From positions 41,168,001 through 41,232,000 of the forward strand of contig NC_082727.1 of assembly GCF_030144855.1 (NCBI RefSeq): a stretch of 64,000 nucleotides of DNA, read 5' to 3'. The notes under the pieces were generated by a model. That model saw only the letters and a program-made list of their open reading frames with translations. It was not told where the DNA came from and searched no databases. Both the position numbers and the translations under genes were made by a program. Source of the stretch: Hypanus sabinus (Eukaryota). Numbering within the stretch: position 1 is the first letter of the stretch; the number at the start of each line of letters is the position of its first letter. This document shows positions 9,927 to 52,400 of this stretch, piece after piece.

Positions 9927-10117
9927 TAGGTGACCCCCCCTTTACAAAGGTAGAGCATTCCTATGAAACCTTTAAGCCGAAACGGCGTAAAACGAAGAAC
10001 CATTAATTTATATGGGAAAATTTTTTGTAAAAGCGAAAATCCTCTTTGTAATGCAAAAACAGATTACTAATGTAGGTTTTTTGTAAAAGCAAAGCGGCGT
10101 AAAGCAGGGGACACCTG
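9927..10117. mobile_element. Tigger-like MITE
   Basis: TA|TAGGTGACCCC ... GGGGACACCTG|TA with an internally palindromic body. Confidence 0.7.
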
Positions 10118-15332: not shown

Positions 15333-17274
15333 CACACCCTCCCGGTCGCAGTACCGCCGCTCGAGTCTGGCGGGGCGAGAACTGCATTTGCCGCAATGCA
15401 TTGCTTCGCCCATTCAGGCGTACGAATGGGTTCCTACAGTCTGGGTTTGTTGGGTCCACGGTTAGTTGGGTAAACCATCTGGAAGTTTGCGCTGCGCACC
15501 AGAACAGAATTGGCACAATTTTTCTTACAAACTAGTTCAAAGGTTCATACTAAGGTAACTCGTATTAGTCGTCACGAGAAGAATGGAAATCTACAGAAAT
15601 TAACTGCGAAATTCAGAATTACTTTTAAGGATGTAACATAAAATATAAGCATGCTATATCTAAATGTTAATTATAGTATAGAGCAATGTTATGATATCGT
15701 TTGTTAGTTGTCCATTATCCAAACAATAAATCCAATCATGTGCTTTAATGATAAGATACGTTTCTTGTGACCTTGACCATTACAAGCGTCCAAATCGGCC
15801 TTTTGAATTACAAAGCAACGCTGCATTACAGGCTGTGAATCGGGTAAATAAGGGAATCTATTAATGTCATATTTTTTCTTATGAATTACTGTTTAACATC
15901 GTTTGTCAGTTATCTTGGATTAATATTTTATTTGTAAAGATGACCCTCTGTTGTTAGAATTTAAACATTGCCCACGTTTAAGAGAACATTTTATTTACAA
16001 AAGCGCTTGTCATCTACGCCCTGTTGGAGATAACTCATTTTTATTCTTCTCGCGTTTGGTATTTAGAACAATAAACGTATCTAATGCTGAATTTCTGGGG
16101 GAAATGCCATTTCGCTTTTTTTTGATAAACTCTGTACGTCATCAATTAAAACGAAACTAGCAACATTAAACATGAATGTTGATACGAGTTGACAATGACC
16201 TTGAGGGTCCAGCGTTGCTGACGATAAATAATTATTCTGATTAAAAATGCACGTGCATGTTAATTTGGCGACGTTTTGATTTGATTGCTGATTTGCATAG
16301 TACGCGGATTAAAAATTTCGATTGAATAAAATGCCGAAGATCATATCTTACAGATCGTCACTTTGATATCAGTCTTTTTTTGGATATAATTTGTCCTTAA
16401 GAAAGTAGAAATAAGAGTTGTCCAATCGTCGCTTGGCGTGCAATAACATGCCAACCAAGGAGCCATTTTATATATTTTAAAAAAAACATTAGTTAGTGTG
16501 GGTAAATATACTGTACGAGAAACGGCAATATGCGGGAGATTTTGAGACATTGTAAAATCTCATCGGCTTGGGGTTGGAAATCTAATTCGTGTCAATCATA
16601 TGTAGAAATGAATAAAATGGACAAGGTCATAAGTTACGTGTCAAAAGAGGTTTTGCTGTTTTAAGAGCGGATTGTTCCATTTATTTTATTGTGAATTCGT
16701 ATTTTCAAAGATCAGCTTATTCTTTTAACGTTCCGAGATAATTTTGGTGCAAAACAGGCTGTTGTTTGCCCGATTTAGGCAGGTTTTTCTTTCGGCATCT
16801 CTTCTTCCCCACCCCCTTCCAGTTGGTCAGGGAGTTTAAATAAAATGCAGTATAGTGCCTACAGCTGTAACTTCGGATATTTATTTTAGATTGCCTATGC
16901 GCCAGTGACAAAAATACACCCACTGGATTTAGCTGGATCGTAAATTTAATGTTAGGTCTTGAAAGCGATCGGGCGATTTAAATTTTAAAATGCATTTTAA
17001 CCTTCTGAAGGACGCAGTACTATTTATTGACGTATGTAAATTAGCAAAGGGCTTTGAAAGCTCTTGAACAGGAACAAGAATCAGTTTCACATTGCGGGTG
17101 AGAGCTGAAGTTCCGGTGTAAAGAAAGACGTGGCGAAATTGGTGAATATCTGTGCCCGCATCCCAAATCTCTCATTCCGAGGACAATCCAGAATACGAAA
17201 GGGTGAAGCCGCTCCTCCTTCTTTCAAAAAGGGAACTATTAATATTGTCCCCACCCCCACCGCCCCTCTGCTAA

Positions 17275-17400
17275 ATGGGGGATTACAGATTTGCTTTACA
17301 GTCACCTAGCAATAATACAGGATTTTCGCCGGCGCTGGAGTACCAGAACACAGCTAATAATAACGCGTCTTTGTTTTTTCCTGTTTCAGCTCCGCAAACC
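17275..17400 (+). CDS. CPEB3: In-frame N-terminal extension of CPEB3 (42 aa, CPEB4-like)
   Basis: MGDYRFALQSPSNNTG...NNNASLFFPVSAPQT is open and in frame with MQDDLL. It resembles the CPEB4 N-terminus (MGDYGFGVLVQSNTG...WLFPAPATHNIQDEIL). Confidence 0.6.
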
Positions 17401-18159
17401 ATGCAGGATGATTTACTGATGGACAAAAGCAAACCCCAACAGCTTTCACCAAGGTCAGAGCAAAGCACCGAAGCCGCAGAAACCCCCAAATCAGAAGAGA
17501 GCCCCGTGAGTATAAACGTCCCGGTTTCTGCCCAGAATAAAGAGAAGGCGCAGATGGAATCGCCAATTTTGCCCGGCTTGAGCTTTCAACCGCAGGAGCC
17601 CGGTAACTCCTTGTCCCCTTCGTTCAGTACATGGTCCACTGGCACCACCAACACCGTAGATGATAGCTTTTTCCAAGGGATCCCACCAGTGAACGGGACG
17701 ATGCTGTTCCAAAATTTCACTCACGTCAACCCGGTTTTCGGTGGCACTTTCTCGCCGCAGATCGGTCTGGCTCAACAGACACAGCACCACCAAGCCGCCC
17801 AACAGCAACAGCAGCAGAGGAGGTCGCCGGTCAGCCCGCAGGCTCCCTTTGCCCAGCGCAGCGCCTACAGCCACCAGCCCATCATGACAAGCAAACCTTC
17901 CTCGGCTTGGAACAACCATCAGAACACTACCTGGAGCACTGCCCCCAACCCTTGGAGCGGGCTGCAAGCCAGGGATCCCCGGCGAGCTGTTGGGGTGCCA
18001 TCCCCACTTAACCCCATCTCTCCGCTCAAAAAACCCTTTTCCAGCAATGTGATCGCCCCTCCTAAGTTCCCTCGAACTGCACCCACACTGAACCCCAAGT
18101 CTTGGATGGACGACAACGCCTTTAGGACGGACAACAACAACGGCATGTTGCAATTTCAG
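17401..18159 (+). CDS. CPEB3: CPEB3 first major coding exon (low-complexity, prion-like N-terminal domain)
   Basis: MQDDLLMDKSK...SFFQGIPPVNGTMLFQNF...VNPVFGGTFSPQIGLAQ...PSPLNPISPLKKPFSSNVIAPPKFPR...KSWMDDNAFRTDN matches CPEB3. Acceptor TTTCAG|C at 17389/17390; phase-0 donor CAG|GTACTG at 18159/18160. Confidence 0.97.
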
Positions 18160-18769
18160 GTACTGTAATGCGTCCTCGAATATTTTCTTCATTACCAGAT
18201 GTACAAAAGACGCGTTAGGACATGACCTTCACAGCCATATTGTCGTGTCATCTTTAATGGGACATGACATTGCAGTGAAAATACCGCATCTGTTCTTTTC
18301 AGCTATTCAGTTACATAGATCAGCTCACATACACCCTCAGTTCATATGATCATGCTCTTGTCACTGTCTAACACCAGGGTTCTTTGTGAACCCCTATTGC
18401 CCCCCCCCCCAAAATCTGGCTGAAAAGCAATGGGCCCGCTTTCAGCACTTGTTTTATTTATGTTGCGTTTTCATGTTGCCAGCATTTTTTGATTCGTATA
18501 TAAAATTGAGATTATCATTGTTCATGAGCTGTATAAAGTATAAGAAATAAATTTCATAGTACAATATGTTAATTTAGGAAAAATCTAACAACCGGCTGTT
18601 TGCAAGAATTAACAGTAGCCAAGACTGTTATCCGGTAGGCCCTGTTGCGGTTAGTGAAGATTACATTTATTGAAGAATCCTGAACGGGTTTATTTTTTCT
18701 CTAATTCATTATTGCATTATGGCGACAGATGACCCTTTTTTTTAAAGGCCGCTTTGTTTGGACAATTGT

Positions 18770-41820: not shown

Positions 41821-42235
41821 CATGCTCTATTACTTCTGTTTGTTTCCGTCATAATAAACAGCCAATGAAAATGAAGGATTAAATCATGCATCTTTTCATG
41901 TTGAATGGTAAGTCCCTTCCTTCATGTCTGCTCAACTACAAAGCAAAATCTTGGAAGCATCAGAGTAAAGCTAGTTGTTGGATTCCAGCTGAATAATGAA
42001 AATTGTTAAACCTATGCTTGGATAACGCTTAGGGGAAAATGAAAGTGTTTGTCATGGGAGGTTCAGAAGTTGTTGACAGCATTGTATGTAACTCTAAAAT
42101 GCTGAAAGGTCCATTGACGTTCTGCAACCTCTCAAAAATACCACAGCAGGTTTCCCTGACTCCCCTGATTCAGCGATGTATTGGAAACTATTTGATATGA
42201 AGCTCTTCCAACAGTCTCTCCCTCTTCAATTACAG

Positions 42236-42395
42236 GACCGGAATCGGCCCTATGATGCATTTAACTTGCACTCTTTGGAGAATTCCTTAATGGATATTAT
42301 GAGAAGTGACCACGAACCAATGAAAGGTAAACACTATCCCCCCAGTGGCCCACCAATGACTATTGCTGACATAATGTGGAGGAATCATTTTGCAG
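42236..42395 (+). CDS. CPEB3: CPEB3 160-nt coding exon
   Basis: Encodes DRNRPYDAFNLHSLENSLMDIMRSDHEPMKGKHYPPSGPPMTIADIMWRNHFA(G). Acceptor TTACAG|, donor CAG|GTTAG, and an internal alternative donor AAG|GTAAAC at 42326/42327. Confidence 0.97.
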
Positions 42396-42939
42396 GTTAG
42401 CAAATTTCTTATTTATGATATGGATACTATATAAAGTTTAAGTGATGCTTTGGTTTTGCATGTTGTATATTTGTTATTGATCGATTTTCTAAATGATTTG
42501 CCATTGTTCAATATTCCACATTCTTTTTCTGTTTCTAACTGCAAAATGGGGAAGATTTTTGCAGCTGTTTTTTTTTGAGAATAAACTTCATAAAAACCTT
42601 CATAACTGCTAATTTATTCCAAGTTAATCCATATGTATCTTTGTAAAACAATGCCTCCGTATTGACAAAATATTTGGTTAGGAGAGTTGTTAACATTTTT
42701 ATTTTGTTCATAGATCAAAACTATCATGCTTTTTTAAAATTTTCAAAGCTCAAAGACAATTTATTAACAAAGTACATATATGTCACCATTTGCAACCCGG
42801 AGGTTCACTCTCTTTTTGCAAGTTTTGCAAGATTCCCTCCCTCTCCATACATTAACTCTTAAATTTCTGGTTTTAAATTTCAATGAGTTTAAAAAAAACA
42901 AATGTAAGCCAGTTTTCAGCTGCAAATTCTGTTAAAGAG

Positions 42940-44526: not shown

Positions 44527-45442
44527 CAGTCGGCCCTCCTTATCCGTGAATTCCGCATGCGTAAATCCAACCAACCACGAATTGTGAAAACCCGGAAGTG
44601 CTCTTCCAGCANNNNNNNNNNNNNNNNNNNNNNNNNNNNNNNNNNNNNNNNNNNNNNNNNNNNNNNNNNNNNNNNNNNNNNNNNNNNNNNNNNNNNNNNN
44701 NNNNNNNNNNNNNNNNNNNNNNNNNNNNNNNNNNNNNNNNNNNNNNNNNNNNNNNNNNNNNNNNNNATCGGGATTGAAAAATATCCGAAGTTCTCTTACT
44801 AGGAGAACTAAGTTGGAACAGGTACATCCAGTATTATTTAGCGTCAGTTAGTCAAACGTTTGCCTTAGTGTATAGTATATATTTTGCCTTTCTATGCATA
44901 TAAAACACTTAAGAACGTATGTTTCAACGCCGGGCTCGGGAACGGAAATTCTCGGGACTTGGGACGGATTGTCCCCAAGCGTGCTCTCCACCGTGTCGGG
45001 TTGATGTGGAGGATCAAAAACCCAAAACCCCAAAACCCAATAATTAAACGACTGTGTTGCTTAGTAATAATTGTATCTTTCATTGGAGTAGAGCCTTCCT
45101 CACTTTATCCTTTAAGATTGTTCTGATCGTTGACCGACATAGCCTAACACTTCTCCAATCACCGATGGCGTTTCACCTCTTTCCAATCACTTTATTATTT
45201 CTACTTTATTTTCAATTGTGTTTGTGATTATTTTCGCGAACAGAAACACTGTGGATTCAGAGTTCTACCACCAGGTCTTAGTGTCCACCGCAGTGAGACA
45301 GGTTAAATCAGGTCTGGGGTTCCACTGGGTCCTAAGGTCCACTGGATTGCGACAGGTTGAATAAGGGACTTGAGCATCTGCGAATTTTGGTAACCGCGAG
45401 GGCTCTTGGAACCAATCCCCCGTGGACAAGGAGGGCCAACTG
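44527..45442. mobile_element. Tigger/pogo-like non-autonomous transposon spanning the assembly gap
   Basis: TA|CAGTCGGCCCTCCTTATCC ... GGACAAGGAGGGCCAACTG|TA. Confidence 0.85.
44612..44766. other. Assembly gap (N run)
   Basis: 155 N bases inside a Tigger-like element. Confidence 1.
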
Positions 45443-48140: not shown

Positions 48141-49362
48141 GGCAGCTTATTCAAAAGGTGCAGCAGGAAGAATGTGTTTGGGATAAAATTCCAGGAAATG
48201 GGAGAGAGAGTAGAATTGGCTGATTACAAATAATTCAGCATCAAATACAATTTTAATGGAATAAGCTTTTGAACAGTGGTCAAGATACTTGATTTTGAAA
48301 TTTACTGACATGTGTTTATTTAAATTGTGTATCAAGAAGGCTATTTGGATTCAAAATGATGGTGACAAGGAATGGATTTTTGTGACGGATTCAAAATGGA
48401 CTGCCATTTAGTCAACTGAAGTCAACTGTAACGTTATAGCTTGGGCTGCAAACTATAATGCTTTTTGCAAATCTGAATTTCCAGCTGGAAAAGCAAACAG
48501 TTCTGTGTAGGGGAGAGCAATGCAAATTTGCCAAGTTAATCCCATTGCCATATCACAAATACTCACAACGCATAAAATTGAGGTTGAATGCTTCGTTCTG
48601 TGGTCATTATTTCTATGGGTTCATGATGCAATTTTTTTGTTTGCCCAAAGCAAAGAACAATCTGTCACTAAACCATAGACAATAAAGCTGAAGGTTTTTA
48701 AGTTAGTGCAGGAATATTTACATACTGATCTTGTTTTACCTGCACAAAGTAGCAAATCAATTTCCTTCATCTGATGTACTCTATATTCTGCATGTGCATT
48801 ATCAATAGATTTTTAAACAGACAATTTTGTAAATCATGTTTTGTAAACTATAATTTGTTCTGTTTACTCTGTGACTTTCAATTTTATTTCTGGTTGCTTA
48901 GCAGATAGAGACATCTTTGGAATTTTGAGTTTGTGTTGTTTTTTGCAACTCTAGTATATAAAATAAAATGGCTGTAAGATGATAAGTAAATATTTTGCAT
49001 TGTAAGTTAGATGTAGATGGGATTATTATCCAAACATTTTATCATATCGTCATTAAAGTGATGGGCAGTAATCTCTCTTTAGAGACCGTGTATATATAAC
49101 TGCTTTAATATTAGCAATTTTATTTTAAAGCGGGTTTGGTTTCTCACGCAGAGGTTTTGGATTATGATGATATAAGTTCTTTGACTTAATTAATATTTAC
49201 CATCTATTTTTCCAAGTTAATTTTTATTGGATGCTGTCAAGATAACTGATGTGCTTCTTGGCCTTGAACTAATGTCTTTCAAAGGCTTAGTGAGAAGAAT
49301 GGTAACTTAAATAATTTAGGGAATATATGTTTCTGAATCTCAGGAACTGTTTTATTTTACAG

Positions 49363-49422
49363 GACGCTTGGGCCTTAATTTTCCTCACCCTGGGACAGAT
49401 AATCTTGTGGCACTAAATAATA
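49363..49422 (+). CDS. CPEB3: CPEB3 60-nt coding exon
   Basis: TTTTACAG| (G)RLGLNFPHPGTDNLVALNN |GTAAGT, phase 1-1. Homologous to mammalian GRMGINFHHPGTDNIMALN. Confidence 0.93.
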
Positions 49423-52400
49423 GTAAGTACTATTATTTTTTTTCTTGTACCTTTTTGTGTTGTGCAAGATAACACATTTACCTTTACTCAAAATGTTTTA
49501 GGTAATACAATCTTCTTGGCACTGAGAGTTCTGATTTATTATATTTTATTATAGGCAAAGGTATACTCTTATAAAATTTAATCCACGCATATATTTTAAT
49601 ATGCATGATTACTGAATCATGTTGTATAAAGTAAATTAAGTTAGTTTAACCAGAAATATCCATGTGTCTAATTCTGGCAAGGAGTAAATTCAGAGTGTTG
49701 CTCTATATTGTATGTACAATCCATCTCAATTGAACAATTTTGTACAGCAAGTTGTGGATATGAAAAAGAACCTTTTTTTAAAAAAAATTGCTTGCGACCG
49801 GTTGGTGCAAATTCATTTGTAGGTCAATTGTATTTTTTATTAGTAGCTATTGTATTTTTTTCTGCCCAATTTTGAGCTTGCATTTGTAACTACATTATAA
49901 TAGTATACCATACAAAGCAAGGGTGCGCATGGTAAAGTGGTCTGAGGAAAGTTGTATGTCTGTATTTTTACAGGTTTTCATGTGAATGAGTACATCATGA
50001 AAGAATATAGAGCTTTTCGTACCAATGTGGCAGGAGTTTTATTAAAATATGCAAAAAGATATCTCAAGAGTTTTGTTAACCAGTCTATATGCAATTGATC
50101 TTCAAGGGTGTGTTTACTTTCTCCTTTCAAATTGCATTCCAACATTATAAATAAAAGCTCACATTAATAAATTTTATACAAGAAATCATCTGTTCCTTTC
50201 TGCCCTATGATGAATCTATATGATAAATTTTAATCATTTTTATTACTTTGGTTACTATAAAGCTGCTTTGGTTATGCCAATGTCCCCTCAATCTGCTCTA
50301 GGAATGACTTAATACGTCAGCTGGTGGAATCTATTATCTGGCGCAATAAATCAAGTCCCATATAAGCAGCAGTAGTTTCAGTCACGAAAAGATATCAATC
50401 TTTGTCCCACTCCTAGTTAGCTAGGTGAAGATCCTTGAAGGAGATAGTAAGACAGAGTAATTTAACAAGACTAGAGTTTGGAGTCTTGATGGAGAAAGAT
50501 AAAGCTTTCTCCTTTTATTCCATATAAATAAAATAAAAGCTACAAAAAGATTCCATCTAAGTTTCAGAGTTAATCAGGGTGCACAACAATTCCAATTAAT
50601 ATTAGTCATACTTTTCCACAACCATTGCAAGTTTGATTTTCTAACAGAAACCATCTAGTTTTTAGAGCAGTGTTTGAAACTTCAGTTACTAGGAGGAGGA
50701 GGCTATCATGTCCTTCAAGTCTGCTGAATCATTCAGTAAGATCACATTTGATTTTTTACCTCCCATCCATAATCCTGTTCCGTTTCCCTTTTCGCTTGAC
50801 CCCCTTTGGATTCTATGAACTATTTTCATGCTGAATAAATTCAACTAGTGAGAATTGAAAAGCTTCACAATTCACTGAAGAAATTCTCCTCATTCCTTTA
50901 TCCTGATACTAGACTTGGGAGTCCAGTCAGAGAAAATAACCTCTCACCCTCTAACAATGGGTAATGGTGTCTTTCAGAATCTTTTTTTATTATCAGTAAT
51001 AGTACTCCTCCAATTGATTGTGTTTCTCAGGATAACATCATCGGCTTCCTGATCATGAGCTTGTTCATTTACCTCTAACTAGCATCTTTTGACTAGCATT
51101 CAGGAATTTTAAAGGCAATCCTTTTTCTATTCTGTTCAATTAAACTTAATTCTGCTTGCATGCTGTATGATCTGTGTAAAAACTTTGAATATCCAAGTGA
51201 ACACTGCACTGGGTGAGGTTATTAATTTTAATTAATTCCTCTTAATTCCTTCAGTTTCTTGATATCAATATAATTAGTCATTCAAAATACTTGGAGAAAA
51301 TATAATAATATTTACATCCATTTTTTCCTTGGTTTAAAATTTCACTTTTACTCTAGCCCACACTGGACCTTTATTTTCTTCTGAAGAATCTGTTGAAAGA
51401 TTGATTGGAACCATGCTGAAAATTTTAAATGAATACTGCAAGTAGCAATTTCTGATCTGTCCCAAGGGAATGTGTCTTGATTTTAGACTCATCTACTTTC
51501 TTTCACATAAAAGTTAATTTTTTTAATAGTAATAGGACTTTTCATCTTTCACTTCAAATGCACATTAAGTTAACTGCAACTGGTCTAAAAGAAAAGTAAT
51601 CATCTACAGATTTAATGGGATTTCTTGTGCTTTATTGCTGAACTTGCTCATGGAGGTCACTTTATTTCACAGAAGTAATGAGATTAGAGAGAATATATTT
51701 TCCTGGACAATTTGTAATGGTAATTGTGACAAGGTTATTTGATTCCGATGAAGTACTGTATGTATTGTGTCGAAGAAGAGAAAGCTTTAAATGCATGTTG
51801 TATTCCTGCTGGTGAAATTCCTTCTTGAGGATAAGTATTAAAATAGTAACACTTCCATTCAAGTTATATTCGTTGAAGTCTGATTGCTATAAAACTTCTG
51901 TTCTTTGGAAAGATAATAATCCCCAATGAATGTATTGATTCTACAATGAGCCTCAAACCTCAGCAAAAGTGTCTTCCCCTTTAGCTATAAGTTTGGAACC
52001 ATTCTTAAGTCCTGACTCATCATGCTAAAGCATCTGTGAAGCTTTATCATTCTTCATCAAGGCTCCAAACCCTGGTCTTGTTAAATTACTGTCTTACTAT
52101 CTCCTTCAAGGATCTTTTCATTGTACACTCCATTAAGTTAAATTTGTGGTTACCTTTTCTCTGACTCGTTGCGTATGTTTGTCTGAATATCCCTCTGGGA
52201 TATATCTCACATTATAATAAATGAAGTTGTCAACCTTTCTCAGATGTACAGTATCTCATTGTAGTTCATTAACTGAAAAAAAAGGTGCCAAACAAATTAA
52301 GTATTTTCACATATGGTTTATTTCGCTTTGTGATAAAATGATATAAATGTAGTTTTCTTCCCAAGCTCAAGAGTCAAATTCAATGTTAATTGTACTCAGA

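Follow-up and report, generated by a model that had tools for sequence, protein, structure and literature searches.

An ancestral CPEB2/3/4-type N-terminus lies almost entirely within a short leader intron at the predicted 5′ end of an elasmobranch CPEB3 gene

The window analyzed here, a stretch of 64,000 nucleotides from Hypanus sabinus, contains a locus that sequence comparisons identify as the 5′ end of the CPEB3 gene. Work on CPEB3 treats it as a prion-like regulator of translation at synapses. When the translated first coding exon was compared by phmmer with 1.84 billion representative proteins, its best match was Mustelus asterias CPEB3 isoform X7 (96% identity, residues 43–295, E=2e-153), with residue 43 of the query aligned to residue 1 of the protein. 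The cluster represented by this isoform also contains proteins from Carcharodon, Cetorhinus and Rhincodon. Furthermore, the protein clusters nearest to the window exon are all named CPEB3, and the exon is collinear with known CPEB3 proteins. CPEB3 homologues bear the conserved domains PF00076, PF16367 and PF16366. No RRM or ZZ exons were found within the 64-kb window, and these exons presumably lie beyond it. A motif search (CW[VI]C) for a MARCHF5 RING exon was also negative across the window. The sequence has a CpG-rich block at approximately 14.5–19 kb and a run of 155 N at 44612–44766 (an assembly gap or masked sequence). The features of the locus are as follows:

15761–15843, + strand: candidate alternative 5′ exon, limits approximate (local tblastn with a Rhincodon typus RefSeq N-terminal peptide, E=0.04)
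16448–16550, + strand: candidate alternative 5′ exon, limits approximate (local tblastn with Cetorhinus maximus isoforms X1, X2 and X6, E=6.5e-4)
17000–17082, + strand: conserved block, putative core promoter (97.6% identity to shark 2, 94.0% to whale shark)
17083–17202, + strand: 5′ untranslated leader exon without ATG (96.7% match to cDNA contig L001; the 5′ end is the inferred transcription start)
17203–17389, + strand: 187-nt GT-AG intron, donor AGG/GTGAAG and acceptor TTTCAG/C (junction of 17202 to 17390 in L001)
17272–17277, + strand: in-frame TAA (17272–17274) and upstream ATG (17275–17277) in a weak context (−3 T, +4 G)
17275–17400, + strand: 42-codon ORF of the N-terminal extension, MGDYRFALQS...ASLFFPVSAPQT, homologous to the ancestral CPEB2/3/4 N-terminus by sequence, phmmer and shuffle test
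17354–17389, + strand: predicted 3′ splice-site signals within codons 27–39 (CTAAT, pyrimidine tract and AG)
17390–18159, + strand: main first coding exon as spliced, with 11 nt of leader followed by the canonical CPEB3 ATG (17401)
42224–42397, + strand: next CPEB3 coding exon, beginning DRNRPYD... (local tblastn; L001 matches 42227–42396 at 96.5%)
49353–49421, + strand: following CPEB3 coding exon (local tblastn and L001 match)

We compared the locus in genomic DNA of three species: the window, the whale shark (contig L003) and a second shark, shark 2 (L004 and L005). The putative promoter block stands out within a wider region of 2.2–2.3 kb that is only 86% (shark 2) and 80% (whale shark) identical to the window. 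The block contains a CRE-like element (TGACGTAT) at 17029–17036. An initiator-like TCAGTTT (17081–17087) spans the A at 17083, the inferred start that coincides with the 5′ end of the cDNA contig. The two candidate exons located farther upstream are probably alternative untranslated 5′ exons in the window because stops interrupt their frame. For example, the candidate at 16448–16550 matches an N-terminal peptide whose frame is broken by stops in the window. The candidate at 15761–15843 is followed by a GT (15844), and its match is weak and its ORF is not conserved.

Direct reading of the sequence bears out the original prediction that the ATG at 17275 opens 42 in-frame codons ahead of MQDDLL. 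Exactly 126 nt separate this ATG from the second one at 17401, and the frame stays open to the end of the exon (18159), where a phase-0 donor begins with the GT at 18160. The two start codons also have the bases claimed for their contexts (a weak −3 U at 17275 and a strong −3 A at 17401, the latter with +4 C). A scan of 17083–17403 found no other ATG. An open frame of this length is, by itself, unremarkable, with a chance probability of approximately (61/64)^42 = 0.13. The motif GCTAA-ATG-GG at the upstream start, with its weak −3 T, is common to the window, shark 2 (L004) and three of four catfish-like contigs, and is replaced at the same position by GCTTAA in the whale shark and by TAG in the fourth catfish-like contig.

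The predicted extension has homology far beyond chance with N-termini of the CPEB2/3/4 family. The phmmer alignments paired residue 1 of the query with residue 1 of a ‘CPEB3-like’ protein of Saccoglossus, an ‘orb2 isoform X1’ of a tick, a ‘CPEB2’ of a pseudoscorpion and further invertebrate proteins. The residue 1-to-1 matches are P0023, P0027, P0034, P0040 and P0041; in P0032, residue 3 pairs with residue 3. These invertebrate matches begin with MG(D/E)Y and reach TMQD(D/E) after 38–42 residues, compared to 42 in the window. We also calculated Smith-Waterman z-scores for the extension against 3000 shuffles. The scores were high for the long CPEB3 forms of lungfish (17.6), cat (20.8) and catfish (10.3), followed by those for Saccoglossus (8.6) and for the arachnids and another invertebrate protein (6.1–7.2). 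None of the 3000 shuffles reached the observed score for any of these matches (z of 6–20). By contrast, the scores were only 3.0 against CPEB4 and 2.4 against CPEB2. The alignments thus identify the extension as the ancestral N-terminus of the CPEB2/3/4 (Orb2-type) family. The extension had been described as CPEB4-like, which holds for the family homology (residue 1-to-1 alignment, z of 6–20) but not for a close relationship to CPEB4 itself (z of 3.0). We therefore prefer the label ancestral Orb2-type N-terminus, since the direct similarity to CPEB4 is among the weakest of the matches.

CPEB4, CPEB2 and the invertebrate CPEB2-4/Orb2-type proteins (Saccoglossus, Amblyomma and Cordylochernes) share with the window the MG(D/E)Y start followed by (T)MQD(D/E), as well as the central (A)LSP..F and N-rich ...SLF(F)(S)P motifs. 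Unlike the window, CPEB4 has an Ile in place of the second Met in representatives P0007, P0010 and P0011, and its N-terminal region is longer. The Gly5 of MGDYGF, otherwise invariant, is an Arg in the window and shark 2 and a Thr in the whale shark; position 5 also varies in some teleosts and arachnids. We considered N-myristoylation through the initial MG and dropped it because an Asp after the Gly disfavors the modification (PROSITE pattern). Two starts have also been modeled in arachnids. In Cordylochernes scorpioides (CP092867.1, L002:9884–10003), two GenBank models place starts at MGDY (9884) and MQDDLL (10001) in one exon. A T-rich run with CAG (approximately 9966–9983) precedes the second ATG by 17 nt at the homologous spot. 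Similarly, isoforms X1 and X2 of the tick Amblyomma are exactly 39 N-terminal residues apart. The two-start arrangement may be older than vertebrates.

Transcript evidence for the locus comes from one Logan cDNA contig (L001, run SRR11241644), which belongs to another, related shark and not to the window's own species. A template-switch oligo tail at the front of the contig and a Nextera adapter at its far end mark it as a fragment of cDNA whose 5′ end is genuine. In window coordinates, L001 passes from 17083–17202 directly to 17390 and onward, and later enters the 42.2-kb and 49.4-kb exons. It is 99.2–99.6% identical to genomic contig L004 (99.2% in the leader exon, L004:2821–2940), and its junction omits L004:2941–3127, a 187-nt GT...AG intron with an intact MGDY ORF inside. 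After splicing, the leader measures 131 nt and has no AUG ahead of the MQDDLL start. At its 3′ end (L001:1075–1201 against window 49356–49438), the contig continues past the donor of the 49353–49421 exon into the intron before reaching the adapter, possibly reflecting intron retention or a fragment left unspliced at that end.

The donor and acceptor of the leader intron are conserved in the window, the whale shark and shark 2, and the intron encloses the upstream ATG and codons 1–38 of the extension. The branch-point-like CTAAT at 17354–17358 places its A (17357) 32 nt upstream of the AG. Furthermore, 18 of the 21 positions of the tract at 17366–17386 are pyrimidines. The acceptor AG (17388–17389) is 11 nt upstream of the ATG at 17401, and the 5′ edge of the exon that follows is in phase 1 relative to the extension frame. 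Hence, the intron has all the hallmarks of the U2-type GT-AG class: the donor, the branch-point-like motif, the pyrimidine tract, the acceptor and a cDNA junction, the latter from the related shark. The original prediction held that the pyrimidine tract and AG inside the extension codons are a real acceptor that removes the extension start, and the L001 junction and the RefSeq models described below confirm it. The AG at 17388–17389 is a genuinely used 3′ splice site, and its use removes the upstream ATG. Word searches in sequencing runs agree weakly with splicing as the default. The 14 small RNA-like runs contain 0.31–0.53 of the words of 16900–18400, and the intron stretch 17203–17382 is absent from all 14 of them; large DNA-like runs contain the same stretch at 0.77–1.00.

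The gene models of elasmobranchs use the same acceptor or dispense with the upstream sequence. In RefSeq, the CPEB3 models of Mustelus, Cetorhinus, Stegostoma, Narcine and Rhincodon have unrelated short 5′ peptides joined just before (S/A)PQT-MQDDLL; in position and phase, the joint falls where an exon that begins at 17390 would place it. MQDDLL is itself the start in models of Scyliorhinus, Hypanus/Hemitrygon, Mobula, Heptranchias, Pristis and Heterodontus. Thus, in at least ten elasmobranchs the models either join other 5′ exons at the acceptor or begin at the canonical Met, and none of the 15 members listed for the elasmobranch protein cluster (53 members) starts at MGDY. Use of the equivalent acceptor point extends beyond this group: a conserved 5′ exon of teleosts and sturgeon (MKIHIWLQNTSY...) joins there, as do 5′ exons in caecilians.

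Long CPEB3 proteins starting with MGDY are annotated in lungfish, coelacanth, bichir and many teleosts, and in many mammals (among them Lynx, Myotis, Sus, Callithrix, Macaca, Chlorocebus and Nomascus). The long forms predicted in RefSeq and UniProt, such as those of Protopterus annectens, Latimeria, Polypterus, Ictalurus, Lynx canadensis (X2) and Macaca mulatta (X5, X7 and X9), resemble the window in having an extension of 40–63 codons, MGDY(G/R)FALQ...SLFFPVSA(A/P)QT, before MQDDLL and two alternative N-termini. The window differs from them in that its extension lies inside a 187-nt leader intron and changes in a non-coding-like manner among the three species. Elasmobranchs also differ from these groups in that the long form is absent among the models listed. 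Judging from these annotations, the long form of CPEB3 is neither new nor specific to sharks or to this lineage. We found no description of a long CPEB3 N-terminus in the literature, where the sole match to MGDYGF was a CPEB4 paper. Furthermore, every MGDY-starting Logan contig that we examined, whatever the vertebrate, continues across the downstream donor into the intron. Such contigs look genomic or unspliced rather than derived from mature mRNA and, therefore, do not document a mature long mRNA for any vertebrate.

These results do not support the earlier proposal that this lineage keeps both forms, and they lean against a substantial long form in sharks. Documentation in sharks is limited to the spliced short form (no MGDY start occurs among the 15 listed models), the RNA-like runs lack the intron stretch and the extension has no codon-position bias in the three-species set. 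Nor would keeping both forms be special to this lineage, given the long isoforms annotated in mammals, lungfish, coelacanth, bichir and teleosts.

Patterns of substitution in the extension also differ from those of the coding sequence that follows. The window, the whale shark and shark 2 all preserve the ORF, its ATG, the stop that precedes it and the acceptor AG. The only indel is an in-frame deletion of 3 nt in the whale shark, so the stops or frameshifts in relatives that would have spoken against the predicted extension are found in neither shark. The variable sites of the extension are distributed as 6:3:4 over the three codon positions, compared to 8:8:71 over the 252 codons that follow (Fisher p=0.0004), a contrast based on only 13 variable sites in the extension. 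Nei-Gojobori omega values are 0.29, 1.06 and 0.66 for the extension versus 0.03–0.06 downstream, though splice-signal constraint on synonymous sites inflates omega. Synonymous divergence is 3–5 times lower in the extension (0.07–0.16) than downstream (0.25–0.50). Hence, the three-species set provides no sign of coding-type purifying selection on the extension, within the limits of 13 variable sites and the confounding splice signals. Between the window and the whale shark, identity is 94% in the promoter block, 94% in the leader exon, 58% at 17203–17274, with out-of-frame indels, and 90.5% in the extension. By these comparisons, the extension is constrained like a nucleotide element and less like a typical coding sequence.

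As a control, we applied the codon-position test to four catfish-like genomic contigs, which represent a group with annotated long forms. The distribution was intermediate (2:7:9 in the extension versus 16:10:72 downstream, p=0.055), so this test alone does not prove non-translation. Comparison of the window with one catfish-like contig separated the two ends of the extension. In the first 10 codons, the differences fall at codon positions 1:0:5 and the amino acids are kept. In the last 15 codons, they fall at 5:1:1 and the amino acids change while the YAG is kept (p=0.03). Pyrimidines occupy 18–20 of the 22 nt before the YAG in the window, the whale shark, shark 2 and two catfish-like contigs. 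The idea that codons double as a splice signal is consistent with this preference for pyrimidines over amino acids in the last 15 codons between shark and catfish. The comparison supports a role of the splice site in shaping the 3′ part of the extension and shows, at the level of sequence, a coding-type history for the 5′ part.

We propose that splicing-out of the extension is probably the default in sharks, with the extension kept mainly as nucleotide signals and the long MGDY protein being at most a minor product. The original first exon would have run from a transcription start near 17083 through a 192-nt leader into the MGDY ORF, with the ancestral N-terminus (MGDYGF...TMQDD) as the source of the 42 codons. 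The short 187-nt intron (17203–17389) would then have been carved from this exon. Its donor would have arisen in the leader, and codons 27–39 would have supplied the branch point, the pyrimidine tract and the AG, as Leu, Phe, Ser and Pro codons are naturally rich in pyrimidines. Splicing deletes the sole upstream AUG, making the Met of MQDDLL the first AUG of the mature mRNA and producing the familiar CPEB3. Other 5′ exons from farther upstream join the same acceptor (17390). The extension would be retained mainly for its splice signals and as sequence close to the promoter. Of these points, the splice junction, the use of the acceptor in many species and the homology of the extension are observed; default splicing, retention at the nucleotide level and a minor long form are what we infer from them. 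Several observations weaken the proposal: the ORF, ATG and stop are intact in three species and the sole indel is in-frame; codons 1–10 have coding-type differences (1:0:5) between shark and catfish; the ATG at 17275 would be the first AUG of an intron-retaining mRNA; long forms are annotated in many bony vertebrates; and assembled contigs drop rare isoforms.

Some of these observations lend credit to a switch between two isoforms, in which tissue- or state-dependent retention of the 187-nt intron in sharks would yield a functional MGDY-CPEB3 with an ancient peptide ahead of the Q-rich region. We consider such a switch possible but doubtful. Given the weak context at 17275, some ribosomes would also pass this start and initiate at 17401; such leaky scanning would require an intron-retaining mRNA. 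Regulated retention is consistent with the preserved ORF, ATG and upstream stop in three species, the in-frame nature of the whale shark deletion and the coding-type differences in codons 1–10 between shark and catfish. Also in its favor are the start context common to sharks and most catfish-like contigs, the lack of AUGs in 17083–17274 and between the two starts, and the long isoforms annotated in mammals, lungfish, coelacanth, bichir and teleosts. There is, furthermore, a precedent in the family: Orb2A mRNA is kept in store in its unspliced form, and its splicing is under regulation (Gill et al., 2017, as summarized in PMC12415542). However, the extension is missing from the shark transcript that was found and from the models listed, the three-species set lacks codon periodicity, the Gly5 conserved elsewhere was lost in sharks and the MGDY-starting Logan contigs read into the downstream intron. 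A broader version of the idea, in which an MGDY-start CPEB3 is a real and regulated proteoform from sharks to primates, made by intron retention or from a start site inside the intron, is in our judgment unlikely.

It is very improbable that the extension is constitutively coding, with the spliced contig and the RefSeq models representing a minor isoform or a habit of annotating from MQDDLL. The intact ORF, its strong homology to annotated long forms and the direct observation of the spliced form in only one cDNA contig fit constitutive coding, yet independent gene models, from at least ten elasmobranchs, have either this acceptor or an MQDDLL start, the RNA-like runs lack the intron words and the substitutions are flat across codon positions. 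As for a chance open frame next to a chance pyrimidine run, without biological meaning, the probability of 42 open codons (about 0.13) is its only recommendation. It is ruled out by the residue 1-to-1 phmmer alignment, the documented cDNA junction, the homology z-scores of 6–20 against shuffles and the 90–97% conservation among the three species next to a flank of 58%, and we give it practically no weight. Default splicing in sharks thus remains our preferred explanation.

The predicted leader-intron arrangement of CPEB3 is no new kind of mechanism and is a fairly ordinary alternative gene start. A comparison within the family is Orb2A of Drosophila, in which intron removal is regulated (Gill et al., 2017, Cell 169:836; cited through PMC12415542). 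As proposed for the window, removal or retention of a 5′-proximal intron decides the N-terminal isoform of a member of this family. The logic is, however, opposite. For Orb2A, the unspliced RNA is non-coding and splicing creates the coding mRNA (PMC12415542), whereas in the window splicing removes the upstream start and retention would lengthen the predicted protein. Exitrons and start-containing introns of 5′ leaders are also similar in that the intron derives from an ancestral exon, the splice signals overlap codons and the choice between splicing and retention sets the first AUG. Unlike exitrons, the donor in the window is in the untranslated leader, so that the multiple-of-3 length rule is inapplicable, and only the spliced form has been seen in sharks.

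The locus shows the origin of the familiar CPEB3 start, as the original start and the first ~40 codons persist inside a small intron. With the leader exon, the intron and the main exon all within 1.1 kb, it offers the clearest view of the history of that start. Conservation of the extension is not readable as coding constraint because the constraint on the splice signals overlaps the codons. Annotators should move the start of shark CPEB3 to the upstream ATG only where transcripts support it, and the predicted long isoforms of mammals merit a direct test. Should the MGDY proteoform be real, CPEB3 would carry an N-terminal peptide conserved in bilaterians ahead of its prion-like domain, in parallel to the logic of the Orb2A and Orb2B N-terminal isoforms of flies. 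The arachnid models (the tick pair separated by 39 residues and the pseudoscorpion pair) would then suggest that the switch predates vertebrates, and the standard MQDDLL construct used in work on CPEB3 prions and memory would lack a natural N-terminal module.
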